This document shows, piece by piece, positions 3,345 through 9,040 of a DNA stretch of 64,000 nt (positions are counted from its first letter, which is position 1; every line of letters begins with the position of its first letter). Origin of the DNA: Perkinsela sp. CCAP 1560/9 (taxonomy: Eukaryota > Protista > Euglenozoa: Kinetoplastea); contig CBFFSA010000015.1 of NCBI GenBank assembly GCA_965644495.1, forward strand, positions 1-64,000, in the 5' to 3' direction. Under the pieces are notes generated by a model, which was not told the origin of the DNA, did no database searches, and saw only the letters and a list, made by a program, of their open reading frames with translations. Made by a program: the position numbers and the translations under genes.

Positions 3345-3566
3345 AGTGTTGTGGAAGAGTGGCCAGCTGGCCATGTTGTGGGAGTGACCATGTTTTGGAA
3401 GTGGCCATGTTGTGGAAGTGACCATGTTTTGGAAGTGGCCAATTTGTGGAAGGGTGGCCAGCTGGCCATGTTGTGGAAGGGTGGCCAGCTGGCCATGTTG
3501 TGGAAGGGTGGCCAGCTGGCCACCAAAAACACGGTTTGTGCTTCGTCGAAAAGTGGCCAGCTGGCC
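3345..3566. repeat. Tandem 18-27 bp repeats containing the palindrome TGGCCAGCTGGCCA
   Basis: GTGGCCAGCTGGCCATGTTGTGGAAGG repeated; 31-bp GTGGCCAGCTGGCCACCAAAAACACGGTTTG at both 2531-2561 and 3508-3538. Confidence 0.9.
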
Positions 3567-3574
3567 TTTCTGTT

Positions 3575-4852
3575 CCTGGGAAACCCGTGATGTGCCTAGT
3601 CAACCTATGCCCGCAGAGGCGACTAGTGAATGGTACGCTAATGATTGAAGATGAAATCATTGTAAAGAACGAGAAGACCAAAGAAGAATTAAGCTCATAC
3701 ATTAAAGAAAATGGAAGGCCTGGTAAAATTTTGGATTGCACAGCCTTCTCAATAGCTGGCATCTCGTCCTCAACAGTAGACGGAAATCTTTCGGCTGAAT
3801 TTCGAAAAAGTGATATTGATGATGAGCTTGAAATTGGGTGCGGCTTCTCTTACACCATTCACAAAGTACAGGGAGCTACTCTTACAGAAAATGTCTGCAT
3901 AGACTTGAACCGCAGACCAACATGCTATCACAGCAAGATGTTATGTCATGCCTCGGTGTACGTGGCCCTCTCAAGAGTAAAAAGTGTGAGTCAACTTTGG
4001 TTACTCCCTGAAAGAAGTGATGGAGGCTTTAGCTACTTGGAAAACTTGCGACCCAACGCCGACGTTTCGAAATTCGTGAAACGTATGACGCAGAAGGAAG
4101 GCAATGAAAAATACGTACCTGAAAAAACTCTGTACCGTTGCCCTCCGCCATCTAAGAAAAAGAAACTGCAAAGAAAGGGGGAATACCCTATGTCGCGCGA
4201 AAGTGAAACTTACACGCGACCCCAGTTAAAAGATCGGACGCAAGACAATCAGTGGACACAACCTGGACAATTTATACCGGACACAGTTATAAACACTTTA
4301 GGTTCAGTACTTTCAAGCCCGTCTGAAAGATATCAAGTATTGGATAGTTCTGTGGCAACTACGATTTTTAAGAGATATGCCACATCAGTAGGGGATTTAC
4401 CGGCAGAAATAAGAACAAGAATTTTCTTGGCTGACCGCACTGCCGTTCCATTCTTTTTCAATCAACACTTCGCTCTATGTGTTATCGTACCGCATGAAAA
4501 TAAAGAAGGCGGAAAGTTACTTTGGTTCGATTCCCTGCCTAACCACAATCCGAGGAGAAGAACTGAAGTGCTCTTAGATGTGCAAACTGTTGCGCAAAAT
4601 ATCTTTCACGGAGCACATGGCTGGGAGATTATACAGGGCTCAACCTTGGTGCAAGATGATGGCACCAATGACTGTGCTTTATTCGTTTGCCGTTGGATGA
4701 TTCAGTGCGCAACTCCAGGTCTCGAAACACCTCCTGAACTGTCTCGTACGGAACTTGCTCAGATCGTCAGCCGGGAATCGGTAGAAGCGGTATGGGCAAA
4801 AGAGCGAAGAACAAGAAATACAGTGGAACAAGAAATGTACAGTGGAAAATAG
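3575..4852 (+). pseudogene. 5'-truncated PIF1-like SF1B helicase C-terminus fused to a Ulp1/C48-like cysteine protease (RepHel remnant)
   Basis: PVMCLVNL..LVNGT, FSYTIHKVQGATL and VYVALSRVKS helicase motifs; QHFALCVI, LWFDSL and QDDGTNDCALFVC give the His-Asp-Gln-Cys pattern of C48; ORF N-terminus is just the tandem repeat. Confidence 0.8.
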
Positions 4853-4922
4853 AAAAGAAATTAGAGTAAATTGATACGAAAATCACATTCATTTTGAATA
4901 CCTTCTTCGTGAGAAGAGGGTC

Positions 4923-4992
4923 CTCAGACAATTATCTCTCGCCTTGACGTGGCGTCTGAGCTTAATGCCTGTTGGCTAACCAAGCAGAGATA
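4923..4992 (+). ncRNA. Candidate HDV-like self-cleaving ribozyme
   Basis: P1 CTCAGAC(4923-29)/GTCTGAG(4954-60); P2 TATCTCTC(4933-40)/GcAGAGATA(4984-92); P3 GCC/GGC; L3 TTGACGT; P1.1 G4946-C4961; P4 with GCC-TGTT-GGC; J4/2 ACCAA. Confidence 0.65.
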
Positions 4993-5201
4993 CATAAAGA
5001 ACTGTCAACGAACGAAATGTTCCGTATGCACGGCCTGGTGTAAGTGTTGGGGGAACCTCGGTTCCGTCTCACTGAGCCAGTGGACGTGCCTATAGGTGCA
5101 CTTTTGCATTATTAAAGTACAACATAAAGGGCTCAATGCTTAACATAAACAAGACGTAAGTAGAATCGAACATAGACCTCCCAGAGGCAAAATGTTAGCC
5201 G

Positions 5202-5421
5202 GGCGGGCCCCTCAAAAAAAAGATTTCAGAAGCTTGCTTTCTTCAAGATTACCTGCCACGAGGTAAAGCACTCCCCGCGCCAGCGGGTCTGCACCGCCTC
5301 GAAGGGCCCTCCCGGCGGGCCCTTCAAAAAAAAGATTTCAGAAGCTTGTTTCCTTCAAGATTACTTGTCACGAGGTAAAGCACCACCCGCGCCAGCGGGT
5401 CTGCGCCTCGAACGGCCCGCC
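5202..5421. repeat. Two tandem ~112-bp copies of a structured GC-clamped module
   Basis: GGCGGGCCC(C/T)TCAAAAAAAAGATTTCAGAAGCTTG... at 5202 and 5314; each copy closed by GGGCC/GGCCC inverted ends. Confidence 0.85.
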
Positions 5422-5424
5422 GTA

Positions 5425-5631
5425 TAACCCAGATTGAAAGGGGCGAGGGAGATACGAAGCAACAGGCGTGGCAGATTCCCACTGAAAAGAAATGGTATCT
5501 CCCGCACGAAGTTTGCCTCCGAGCTAGAAAGCACAAAGGCTTTTCTCGTGCGGGGAGATACCATTTCTTTTCAGTGGGAATCTGCCACGCCTGTTGCTTC
5601 GTATCTCCCTCGCCCCTTTCAATCTGGGTTA
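5425..5631. repeat. Long near-perfect palindrome (~85-bp arms, 36-nt loop), 3' terminus of element H
   Basis: 5425-5509 is the reverse complement of 5546-5631 with one extra G. Confidence 0.95.
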
Positions 5632-5651
5632 ATATAATAGAACTCTTGACT

Positions 5652-6420
5652 CCGCGCACCACCACAGACCCGCTGTCTTCGCAGCCGACCGACTTCATGA
5701 CAGACAGAGCGCCAGAGCATGGGTCCGCCGATACACCGAAAAGGAGCTGATAGCTGAGTATCGCCGCCGCGCTCCCGTCGCCGCTAAATGGTTTAGTGAG
5801 GAGACAGATGCTGAGTTAGCTGAGGATTTTGCGCGAGCTCTGCACAATATACATGGAAAAGAACTCTCTCGGTTTACTTCGATCTTCGTCAGCTAACTCA
5901 CGTGCATGGTGGAATGTGCATGGGGAAATATTGTGTCGGTATGTGTAACGGCCTCTTACAAGGCCGTTATACACACCGACACAATATGATTCTGAAGGTC
6001 CTACTAGACACGCTTCGAAGTTGTGGCCACATACGAGAAATGTATTTTGATCTACCTGGCAACCCCTCCGAGGAGCACCCACCATCATGGCTAGCAAACT
6101 TTAGCACGCTACGACCAGATGGGTGGATTCTCATAGAACATGGCTCAGAAAACATCATTGAACTCACCTCCCCGTGGGAAGAAAATTTTGATAAAGCCCG
6201 CGAACGAAAGTGCGCAAAGTACGAGGAAATTTTGCGCTACCGACAGGCAACAAACGTACGCACGAGCCTCATAACATTTGAGGTCGGAGCTCGGGGCAAA
6301 CTTAGCGATAGTACGCTCGGTCTTTCCTGGGTATTCCCGAAAGATCATAAATACCACGTTCGCTTTTGTCATCGTAGAGGTGATGAAGAATACCAGTGAC
6401 GCCGAATGAGGATCGAATAC
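5652..6420 (+). mobile_element. 5'-truncated RLE-type (HERO/NeSL/R2-like) non-LTR retrotransposon fragment
   Basis: YTHRHNMIL, LRPD, IIELTSPWEEN, KYEEI and FEVGARG restriction-like endonuclease motifs; flanked by 10-bp direct repeat ACTCTTGACT (5642-5651, 6421-6430). Confidence 0.8.
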
Positions 6421-6464: not shown

Positions 6465-7655
6465 TTATTGGCTCGAAGAACTGGTATAGAAGATTTTGTT
6501 TGATGCCTCCAAAACGCTATCCGTTATTGAATATATCATTTGAATCCAATTGCGCCATGCAGTAGTGCTGTGCTTTTTTATGTTTGCAATTATGTACTGA
6601 TCACAAGGTTGGAACACATGAGTCATTTTCGCCGGGATATCTACGACACTGCAATTGTGATCTTGAAGAAGTTTTCGTACATCTCCATGTTGTTTGGCTT
6701 GGTCAATAATCAAAAGAGCTGTGGCGTGGATTTCCCCAATCTCCATTCGGATCTCCTTAAGATTACCTTGAAACCATTGAACCCATTTCTCAAAGGTCGT
6801 TGCGTCTTGAAAATGAGAAGAAGTCCGATGATCTTGCAAAATACGGTTGTCAAGCTCAGGAACTTTGGCGTGGACTGCATTGGTTGCACCTTTCCAGATA
6901 AATTGAGCACCATGAATTTTTCCATCACCAGAAACCAGGACGCTGCACGTGAACCCAAGACGTGAGGACCCTATTTGAATAGGCTTTCCTTTTTTTGCAC
7001 GTATCCATGTCCATCGATGGTTCTTCTCATCTAGATGACAAAAAAATTCATCCATATTGAACAGCTCGGGTTTCACAGTGCAGTGCTTTTGAAGATCATC
7101 TAAGAAGTTTTTTCCAGCATTTTTTTCCTCGGATGCTGTCACGCGTCGGTGCGACGTTGCAGCTCGAAAATTGAAACCATTAGAACGCAGAAACGAACTA
7201 GCCCACGAATCACTTACAATGAAAGGGCCACCATTCTCAGGCAAAACACTGGGGCGCATTTTGTCAATAAGACCGCGTGCAATGGAGGACACAAACGGAG
7301 CGTCTATAGCCTTGCTTTGGCCATTATAGCAAGTAATAGCTGTCAAAAGCTCCTCCTTCTCAGAGTCTGTAAGTAGAAACGGTCTTCCACGCTGTACGGT
7401 GGGATCTCGGTCCCGAAGAGAAAACACGGTGGTCATGGTCATTCGTTTCTCATGGGTTGAATTCCAGATGCGCACAGCATCTGATACTGTAGAATATTTG
7501 CAAAGAGAGTGAAACTTTTCCAATTCTTCCTTGCTCCACACCTTGCGACGCTTTAGATTGCCTTCTTTTCTTTCGCCATAGTCGTCCAACGCACGTTTGG
7601 GGGCACCGCTTACTGTGGTAGTCTCCAAGGACAACTGGTCGTATTCTCGAGACAT
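6465..7655 (-). pseudogene. pogo/Tigger-like transposase (CENP-B-type HTH plus DDE_1), C-terminally disrupted
   Basis: SDSWASSFLRSNGF HTH region; FNMDE, LLIIDQAKQH and THVFQPCD catalytic motifs. Confidence 0.85.
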
Positions 7656-7682: not shown

Positions 7683-9040
7683 TTGAGGGAGATACTACTC
7701 CCTCGCTACCGTAGGTTAATTCGTCGTGCCCGATTTGTGGACCGATTTGTGGCCCGATTTCGTGCCCGATATCGTGCCCGATATCGTTTCAGGTGATTTT
7801 TCGAAAAAATTATTTACAAAGACGTATGAATCGAATTTAGTGACAAGATTACTAGTTTTTCAACAATTCCGATGGGTACCCCCTGCCCCCCCTCCCACCA
7901 TGGTGATCATATCAATTTTTGAAATTTTGCAAAACAAAACTAAAAATTTGTGGGTGAAAGTGAAAAAATATATTTTTCCCAAATCAACTCTTAGACCGTT
8001 TTTTGAGAGTTTGGGGCCTGATATACGTGTATACGCTTTGGTTTCATTCGATATTTCTCCACCCTGTTCTGGTAATATACCTACAAAGTCCAAAATTTAC
8101 CTGGAAGTGTGTGACACGCAAGTCTGTAGAGGAAGGAGGAGGCGCAAGGCAAAACGGAAGAAGGCGGAGCCTTCTGTCTCTTTGCCGCGGCGACGACGAC
8201 TTCCTCGCGTGGGAAGCTGTAAGGGATCTTAGGGAGCATGTTCCGATAGCTATGTAATCCAGGGTAAAGTGGACGAGGGAGATACTAAAGGCACCTTTGG
8301 AAAACCACCTCGAAACTGGAACGGTATCCCCCGGTTTGTAGGGCATTCTGATGGTGGAGCATTATGATGATGTAGAGATTTCGTGCCCGATATCGTGCCC
8401 GATATCGTTTCAGGTGAGCTTTCGAAAAAAACGTTTATAAAGACGTATGAATCGAATTCAGTGACAATATTACTAGTTTTTCAAGAATTCAGATGGTTAC
8501 CCCCTGCCCCAACCACGTCCCCACCAGGGTGATCATAGCAATTTTTGAAATTTTCCAAAATAAAAAACTAAAAATTTGTGGGTGAAAGCGATTTTGTTTT
8601 TCCCAAATCAACTCCTAGACCGTTTTTTGAGAGTTTGGGGCCTGATATACCTGTATACGCTTTGGTTTCATTCGATATTTCTCCACCCTGTTCTGGTAAT
8701 ATACCTACAAAGTCCAAAATTTACCTGGAAGTGTGTGACACGCAAGTCTGTAGAGGAAGGAGGAGGCGCAAGGCAAAACGGAAGAAGGCGGAGCCTTCTG
8801 TCTCTTTGCCGCGGCGACGACGACTTCCTCGCGTGGGAAGCTGTAAGGGGTCTTAGGGAGCATGTTCCGATAGCTATGTAATCTAGGGTAAAGTGGACGA
8901 GGAAGATACTAAAGGCACCTTTGGAAAACCACCTCGAAACTGGAACGGTATCCCCCGGTTTGTAGACAATTCTGATGGTGTAAAAGTCAAAAAACATATT
9001 TTTCCCAAATCAACTCCTAGATCGTTTTTTGAGAGTTTAG
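7683..9040 (+). mobile_element. Non-autonomous family F 5' portion with 12-bp subterminal repeats and an internal ~620-bp tandem duplication
   Basis: A^TTGAGGGAGATACTACTCCCTC hairpin start; GTGCCCGATWTC/GTGGCCCGATTT repeats; ~7760-8375 repeated at ~8380-8980. Confidence 0.75.

Follow-up and report, generated by a model that had tools for sequence, protein, structure and literature searches.

A candidate HDV-like ribozyme behind the Rep/helicase gene of a Helitron family and its possible role in forming an mRNA 3' end

Introduction

The self-cleaving ribozymes known in mobile DNA come from retroelements and release the RNA from which new DNA is copied. DNA transposons need no such RNA template, and a ribozyme that follows a transposase-like gene points to the making or insulating of an mRNA end. 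A locus in Perkinsela sp. raises exactly this question: what does a self-cleaving ribozyme do behind the gene of a rolling-circle transposon, if it is a ribozyme at all and if it belongs there? A full-text literature search returned no paper linking HDV-like, twister or any other self-cleaving ribozyme to Helitrons or other DNA transposons. Coordinates given without further label refer to the whole stretch of DNA analysed, 64,000 nt long, which is called the window in the following.

Results

Fold and position of the candidate ribozyme

Read directly from the sequence, positions 4923-4992 form a complete HDV-like nested double pseudoknot of 70 nt with P1, P2, P3, P1.1 and P4 in canonical order. 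A sequence-only reading of the window had listed these helices together with L3 and J4/2, and each element was found again at its place:

4923-4929 with 4954-4960, plus strand: P1, CUCAGAC/GUCUGAG, seven perfect base pairs, the first being C4923-G4960
4933-4940 with 4984 and 4986-4992, plus strand: P2, eight base pairs with C4985 bulged
4941-4943 with 4951-4953, plus strand: P3, GCC/GGC, three base pairs
4944-4950, plus strand: L3, UUGACGU
G4946-C4961, plus strand: P1.1, a single pair between L3 and the nucleotide after P1
4967-4969 with 4974-4976, plus strand: P4, three base pairs only, loop UGUU
4977-4983, plus strand: J4/2, UAACCAA, with C4980 in a C-N-R-A context

By analogy with known ribozymes of this type the predicted scission site is 4922/4923 and C4980 is the putative catalytic cytosine. 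It stands within CCAA, after which G4984 of P2 follows directly; the C-N-R-A context is what is to be expected of an HDV-type catalytic cytosine in J4/2. An L3 of seven nucleotides, with U first and C-G at positions 5 and 6, is the family pattern known from HDV and CPEB3, and the UUGACGU of 4944-4950 fits it in all three respects.

When both strands of the 64-kb window were searched with a generic HDV descriptor written by ourselves, 4923-4992 was the sole clean hit. Rfam gave no match at gathering level over the whole window, and all Rfam HDV models score the candidate below gathering. The only HDV-type model to match at a permissive threshold, and hence the best match, is RF02682 (HDV-F-prausnitzii), a family of bacterial hosts, which aligns end to end (4923-4997) with 19.6 bits, far below its gathering score of 44. 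Run on the whole genome, RF02682 returned three weak and unrelated hits only, few candidates being scored. The thermodynamic z-score of the 71-nt ribozyme stretch is only -1.0. To judge from its sequence, the candidate is structurally HDV-like but belongs to a new sequence family that is not in Rfam.

The Helitron that carries the candidate

The element in which the candidate lies is laid out as follows:

3446-4852, plus strand: remnant of an ORF, coding for the C-terminal part of a Helitron Rep/PIF1-helicase protein whose tail is weakly Ulp1/C48-like; stop codon at 4850-4852
4853-4922, plus strand: post-stop leader with hairpin 1 (4861-4897) and a 9-bp GNRA-capped hairpin (4900-4921); C4922 lies just 5' of the predicted cut
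4923-4992, plus strand: HDV-like ribozyme candidate, resting on the sequence read, the hit of model R1 (see below) and covariation
4993-5197, plus strand: spacer, found in the Helitron copies, in which about 5018-5100 forms an extended hairpin (-37 kcal/mol, z -2.2); it would join the 3' cleavage product
5198-5422, plus strand: two tandem modules of about 112 bp (self-match of 5198-5312 and 5311-5422), whose copy number varies among element copies
5425-5631, no strand: terminal palindrome, arms 5425-5503 and 5553-5631 of 79 nt each, 100% complementary

A domain search with the ORF at 3446-4852 gave only weak hits to Pif1_2B, Peptidase_C48 and Ulp1. A near-complete copy on C5 (L071), 98.7% identical to the window at the nucleotide level over 3622-5127, carries on one strand and in this order Helitron_like_N (PF14214, E 8e-20), PIF1 (PF05970, E 1.9e-13), the ORF shared with the window and the ribozyme. 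Rep and then a PIF1 helicase thus stand in one gene, which is the arrangement by which a Helitron is recognised. Judged by this comparison, the window copy is a 5'-deleted derivative of a Rep/Hel Helitron that kept the C-terminal part only, and the earlier placing of the ribozyme inside a Helitron, after the helicase ORF, is borne out by the upstream domains of the C5 copy. A 3'-terminal palindrome, likewise a Helitron feature, is present at 5425-5631; the copies are homologous up to 5631 and no further, so that the palindrome marks where the Helitron-like element ends on its 3' side.

The end of the ORF and the cut site are 70 nt apart. This leader (4853-4922) folds with -17.1 kcal/mol (z -3.4). 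The GNRA-capped hairpin that the sequence-only reading had put at about 4902-4919, just upstream of the cut, has nine base pairs (4900-4908/4913-4921) and a GUGA loop; it folds with -12.7 kcal/mol (z -4.2) and ends 1 nt before the cut.

A stretch of 151 nt around the site is present in at least 10 copies of 96-100% identity in the 21-Mb genome (type A); the genome search scores only part of its candidates, so that copy numbers are lower bounds here and below. All 10 copies found lie in an element of the same Helitron family, and all keep at least about 4855-5422, that is the last 68 nt of the leader, the ribozyme, the spacer and the 112-bp modules, of which L004 and L009 hold several copies. 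Nine also keep 4734-4854, and most retain the palindrome with its 79-nt arms. The ribozyme has a fixed place in this Helitron. The ribozyme is intact in four copies, and the others show a break in P3 (C31), P4 (C19) or P2 (C70), or C4980A (three copies). C4980A is limited to three derivatives without the ORF, on C1, C11 and C38. Their flanks differ and they represent independent insertions, which means that they transposed after loss of the catalytic C; the restriction of C4980A to non-coding derivatives fits a role tied to the coding copy.

Elsewhere in the window, just beyond the Helitron palindrome, a 396-aa ORF on the minus strand (6465-7655) encodes a DDE_1 transposase domain (E 9e-10). 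Between about 20000 and 55000 there are matches about 3420 bp apart (28.5-28.9, 33.8-34.3, 37.3-37.7, 40.7-41.1, 44.1-44.5 and 47.5-47.9 kb), a spacing that suggests long tandem repetition of a unit of about 3.4 kb.

Relatives and covariation

Being 96-100% alike, the type A copies are too similar for testing the structure. A pattern search for the P3-L3 core yielded a diverged sister group in the same genome, type B, with about nine good and three degenerate copies. Type B retains the core C-GCC-UUGNCGU-GGC-G, C-UUA after P1 and AACCAAG before P2; its P1 reads CCAGAGC/GCUCUGG, and P1, P2 and P4 all differ from type A. A covariance model (R1) was built from six type B sequences only, without the sequence of 4923-4992. 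It hits 4923-4992 exactly and in full length with 44.3 bits (E 2.3e-8 in the window, E 7.6e-6 in the whole genome), so that a covariance-model search, which had been proposed as a check, recovers what the Rfam models score below gathering. Over the genome R1 finds at least 22 members.

Scanning metagenomes with the conserved core added four environmental contigs, in which P1, P2 and P4 occur in two other versions. These relatives (L075-L078: Ga0063136_1065792, Ga0115013_10063306, _10210721 and _10232453) have longer P4 stems, and upstream of one of them, at a distance of about 320 nt and on the same strand, is an ADP-ribosyltransferase-like ORF. Besides those of this genome, the family counts members in metagenome contigs of marine type and in a phage contig described below, the latter with an identical P3-L3 core.

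An alignment of 13 sequences (type A, type B and the four metagenome contigs) was fitted to P2, P3 and P4 and not to P1, which makes P1 an independent test. In this alignment 95.4% of the cells pair and 15 of the 23 pairs change on both sides, most of the covariation resting on four or five lineages. None of 500 shuffles matched any of the five measures, and when the partners were slid pairing reached at most 44%. P1, outside the fitted model, pairs at 100% with five of its seven pairs covarying, and P2 at 93.8% with six of eight. In a second alignment, fitted to P1 but not to P2, P2 is still 77% paired, and the shortfall arises because the bulge moves.

P3, L3 (UUGNCGU), P1.1 and J4/2 vary hardly at all among the aligned relatives, as would be expected of a catalytic core. 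The P1.1 pair G4946-C4961 is present in 11 of the 13 sequences. J4/2 is kept as AACCAA in nearly all type A, type B and metagenome members; the exceptions include a degenerate type B copy, L054 (CCAC), the degenerate copies L050-L052 and the three ORF-less type A copies with C4980A. Since P1 and P2 both covary around a nearly invariant core, we take the fold as real. The changes between type A and type B are fully compensated in P1, P2 and P4, which indicates that the fold has been under selection in its lineage. The reading as an HDV-like ribozyme, for which covariation among homologues had been named as a check, is thereby supported: in genomic as well as metagenomic relatives the core is conserved and P1, P2 and P4 have undergone compensatory substitution, the two crossing helices P1 and P2 included.

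The P3-L3 pattern search by itself showed no enrichment over its control, and most hits with one mismatch are non-ribozymes. Two recurring motifs, "type C" near RT genes and "type D", were rejected for want of a P1 partner. A 24-nt motif identical to the P3-L3-P3' core, again without P1 partner, occurs at G000:C1:2401101, C8:791599, C20:5948, C49:29408 and C7:504786, and at four of these five places an RT domain follows about 800 nt downstream. The motif may be what is left of a decayed ribozyme within a retroelement, or a chance match.

Surroundings of the type B copies

In type B the ribozyme moves together with a 15-nt pyrimidine-rich leader as a cassette of about 87 nt, which is found between several unrelated non-Helitron flanks. 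These unrelated contexts make a capture by the Helitron plausible. The leader of about 15 nt (ACTTCTTG-N-CTCT) precedes the cut site, e.g. in L044 (1468-1483), L055 (1542-1560, minus strand) and L046 (1469-1483), and homology among the copies begins exactly at it. Some type B loci have inverted repeats nearby. In two cases an RT domain follows on the same strand after 3-4 kb, and no long ORF was found within 1.5 kb downstream of type B copies.

Three ideas about the upstream region were dropped. The upstream CUUCUUG is not a widespread transposon terminus, the exact 13-mer occurring only twice in the genome; a pairing of CUUCUUG with the 3' strand of P2 showed no covariation when read by eye; and the upstream hairpin is not a general trait of the ribozyme family, as type B does not have it.

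Helitron relatives without the ribozyme

The closest relative of the Helitron, on C1, has 59% amino acid identity, with PIF1 upstream and Helitron_like_N further upstream. With models R1 and R2 no ribozyme was found after its ORF. Directly after the ORF it carries two long palindromes (L073 2566-2742 and 2795-2988; G000:C1:2626565-2626987), whose arms of 74-78 nt are 96-97% complementary and give spurious high-scoring matches to plant miRNA precursors in Rfam. Searches with R1 or R2 and filters off likewise revealed no ribozyme near the relatives on C1, C2, C10 and C19. The only homologue found outside this genome, an ENA contig with 45% amino acid identity, ends at about the stop codon.

A second Helitron family with a twister-type candidate

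A second, distant Helitron family has Rep and PIF1 in one ORF and is about 27% identical to the first over the matched part of the helicase. Some 42-47 nt after its Rep/Hel stop lies a full-length match to twister-P1 (C8:161851-161921; L069 3852-3922, plus strand, beginning 42 nt after the stop codon) with 24.4 bits and E 0.01, below gathering; the same candidate is found in L068 (C4:1119137-1119207, minus strand). By hand P1, P2, P4, a P5 hairpin with UUCG loop and both pseudoknots can be recognised, and the T1 pseudoknot has CAC/GUG instead of CCC/GGG, a compensatory change. There are at least seven copies with equal scores, and for six of the seven a Helitron_like_N hit is located 2.6-4.4 kb upstream on the same strand.

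In both families the post-stop leader consists of GAAATTAGA, then TTGAWACGA and then a CUUCUU-loop-GAAGA hairpin. A local alignment of the two leaders scores 28, against 13.1 +/- 2.5 for shuffles, none of 2000 shuffles scoring as high; judged by this similarity the leaders are homologous. The twister candidate thus shares with the HDV-like one the position after the stop codon, the leader and the CUUCUU/GAAGA hairpin upstream, whereas the ribozyme class is unrelated and the Helitron protein distant. The downstream region of the twister-bearing family, about 2 kb, is also quite unlike that of the first. Finding ribozymes of two unrelated classes after one leader, at one position, speaks for selection on self-cleavage at that site.

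The genome as a whole contains over 50 full-length matches that resemble twister-P1 (18-39 bits, all below gathering; e.g. C7:523337-523404, C8:229834-229904 and C15:75560-75631). Most of them are not near Helitron Rep domains, and together they look like a large dispersed twister-like family. About 4 kb past the ORF of the twister-bearing Helitron, a cluster of five tRNA genes and a tRNA-Sec-like gene scores above the Rfam gathering level (L069 7845-8560; G000:C8:165844-166559).

Discussion

Comparison with known HDV-like ribozymes

The nearest parallel is the ribozyme of L1Tc/ingi retroposons (L1TcRz, Pr77), which likewise sits in a mobile element of a kinetoplastid-type host and folds as an HDV-like double pseudoknot; the likeness is one of structural features. 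Both have a C at +1 paired with G (PMC4035085 for C at +1), and both have a 3-bp P3 and a single-pair P1.1 (PMC3185411, PMC4035085), the P1.1 of L1Tc-type ribozymes being 1-2 bp (PMC3185411). The sequence-only reading had named the C-G start and the one-pair P1.1 of L1Tc, and the C at +1 and the single pair are confirmed by these sources (PMC4035085, PMC3185411). In both ribozymes the upstream sequence matters for folding. L1TcRz, however, makes up the 5'-terminal 77 nt of a non-LTR retroposon, whose 5' end it releases, and also serves as a promoter. In this the Helitron ribozyme does not match: it lies 70 nt after the stop codon of a rolling-circle transposon gene, and it was always found internal to the Helitron and never as the first 77 nt or so of a non-LTR retroposon.

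SIDER2 of Leishmania offers a case of an HDV-like ribozyme-bearing sequence in the 3' UTR of kinetoplastid mRNAs that is linked to mRNA fate (PMC4035085). SIDER2 sequences are degenerate retroposons in host genes, whereas here the ribozyme belongs to the transposon's own gene unit. The R2 ribozyme cuts the RNA of a mobile element from a co-transcript, as proposed here, but at the 5' junction with 28S rRNA and not on the 3' side of the coding region of a DNA transposon.

HDV-like ribozymes of bacteria and phages, among them minimal and theta ribozymes, have been described (PMC10879173). A phage-like GC-rich contig (L085, IMG/VR UViG_3300009481_000027) contains five intergenic HDV-like ribozymes (146-226, 1403-1483, 5633-5715, 6881-6963 and 8421-8477) without P4 and with the same P3-L3 core, each having a GC hairpin 2-4 nt before the cut and AAGGAG plus ATG after it. 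They are probably "minimal" HDV-like ribozymes that would cut a polycistronic phage transcript between genes. The order of hairpin, cut site, HDV-like ribozyme and next gene, repeated five times, is the layout of the Helitron; in contrast to the Helitron, the phage lacks P4, has a Shine-Dalgarno sequence and start codon downstream and belongs to bacterial hosts. This recurrence points to a common principle, namely that the newly made 3' end is protected by the hairpin.

A possible 3'-end-forming module

We propose that 4923-4992 is a genuine HDV-like self-cleaving ribozyme which, as a fixed module of one Helitron family, cuts the Rep/Hel mRNA free, and we hold this complete reading to be about evenly poised between right and wrong. 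Cleavage itself, and its benefit to the element, are what we infer from the observed fold and covariation, the fixed place in the Helitron and the parallel twister case. The ribozyme would be transcribed on the same strand as the Rep/helicase gene. The 9-bp GNRA hairpin (4900-4921) would form first and keep upstream RNA out of the ribozyme, which would then fold into the nested double pseudoknot. C4980 in J4/2, by analogy with C75 of HDV, would catalyse scission between C4922 and C4923. The product would be an ORF RNA with a 70-nt 3' UTR, a stable terminal hairpin and a 2',3'-cyclic phosphate, and without poly(A). The cut would free this RNA from about 640 nt of terminal repeats and the perfect palindrome with 79-bp arms, which as RNA would be a long duplex.

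In kinetoplastid-type organisms the 3' end of an mRNA is normally set by the next downstream trans-splice site. Spliced-leader trans-splicing seems to operate in the host as well: at C12:255060-255080 and C21:14576-14596 the genome matches, with one mismatch, the 3' end of the kinetoplastid spliced-leader exon and a GT after it, and the control gave no match. Where host mRNAs are tied to the next splice site in this way, a transposon bringing its own ribozyme would make its 3' end independently of its landing place. The locus is present in four sequencing runs of one study, the contigs of which are DNA-like and span 4922/4923, and none of its sequence words turned up in a possible RNA run; neither result speaks to expression.

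The twister candidate at the same post-stop position lends weight to the proposed 3'-end role. On a wider view, Helitrons here may have recruited at least two unrelated ribozyme classes, HDV-like and twister, behind a shared leader as a portable 3'-end-forming module, giving a hairpin-capped mRNA that is independent of poly(A) signals and cut from the palindrome; we put this forward tentatively, and with less confidence than the reading of the HDV-like case.

Alternative explanations

The main rival accepts that the ribozyme is real and probably active, and sees in it a passenger, a captured or inserted cassette of leader and ribozyme that is of no use to the Helitron. Helitrons are known for the capture of foreign sequence, type B copies have only about 15 nt of leader and the ribozyme in common and differ in their flanks, the nearest Helitron relative (C1) does without a ribozyme, and copies decay regardless of structure, as seen in the breaks of P3 (C31), P4 (C19) and P2 (C70) and the three cases of C4980A. 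Two neutral captures at one place are unlikely, however, and the second family carries a different class at the same post-stop position behind a homologous leader; moreover, the compensated changes of P1, P2 and P4 between types A and B do not look neutral, and only the Helitron version has a strong hairpin directly next to the cut site. We consider the passenger explanation unlikely, though it deserves more weight than any other rival. Somewhat less probable still is that the ribozyme acts on what follows it, either by setting the 5'-OH end of a non-coding RNA composed of ribozyme, spacer, 112-bp modules and palindrome, or by lowering Rep/Hel expression through removal of the normal 3' end. 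HDV-like ribozymes normally remain on the 3' product and define 5' ends, as in R2 and L1Tc (PMC3185411), and PMC4035085 links Leishmania 3' UTR retroposon sequences with HDV-like ribozymes to lower mRNA levels. The structured region after the ribozyme is, furthermore, kept in all copies including those without the ORF. But no Rfam family matches this downstream region, the ORF-less derivatives that keep it have lost the catalytic C and still transposed, and the corresponding 2 kb or so of the twister-bearing family are quite different.

Far less probable than either is the alternative already raised by the sequence-only reading, a retroposon 5' remnant of the L1Tc/ingi or SIDER kind inserted in the Helitron. 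The C at +1, the 3-bp P3 and the single-pair P1.1 are as in trypanosomatid retroposon ribozymes (PMC3185411, PMC4035085); the genome is very rich in reverse transcriptases, and two type B copies have an RT domain 3-4 kb downstream. Yet neither RT nor poly(A) tail nor target-site duplication was found after 4992, the genome search never met the type A sequence outside the Helitron, type B copies have no long ORF within 1.5 kb, and conservation among them extends 15 nt beyond the cut on its upstream side, into sequence that would be missing from a retroposed RNA. This alternative found no support and is unlikely. A chance fold without catalytic activity could be argued from scores below every Rfam gathering threshold, the z of only -1.0 for the 71-nt stretch and the very short P4. 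The hit of the independent model R1 (E 2.3e-8) and the compensation in both crossing helices across at least four lineages, around an invariant catalytic core, make it very unlikely.

Significance

What is new is the Helitron position after the ORF, the shared leader and the pairing of HDV-like and twister ribozymes. Two unrelated classes at the same place in two Helitron families strengthen the reading that an mRNA end is formed here. If confirmed, this would be a new biological role for HDV-like and twister ribozymes, and it would show how a transposon can express itself within a polycistronically transcribed genome; it would also provide compact natural 3'-end cassettes for trypanosomatid genetics. 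If the portable module of two classes holds true, it would be the first case described of a DNA transposon using ribozymes as a device for gene expression.
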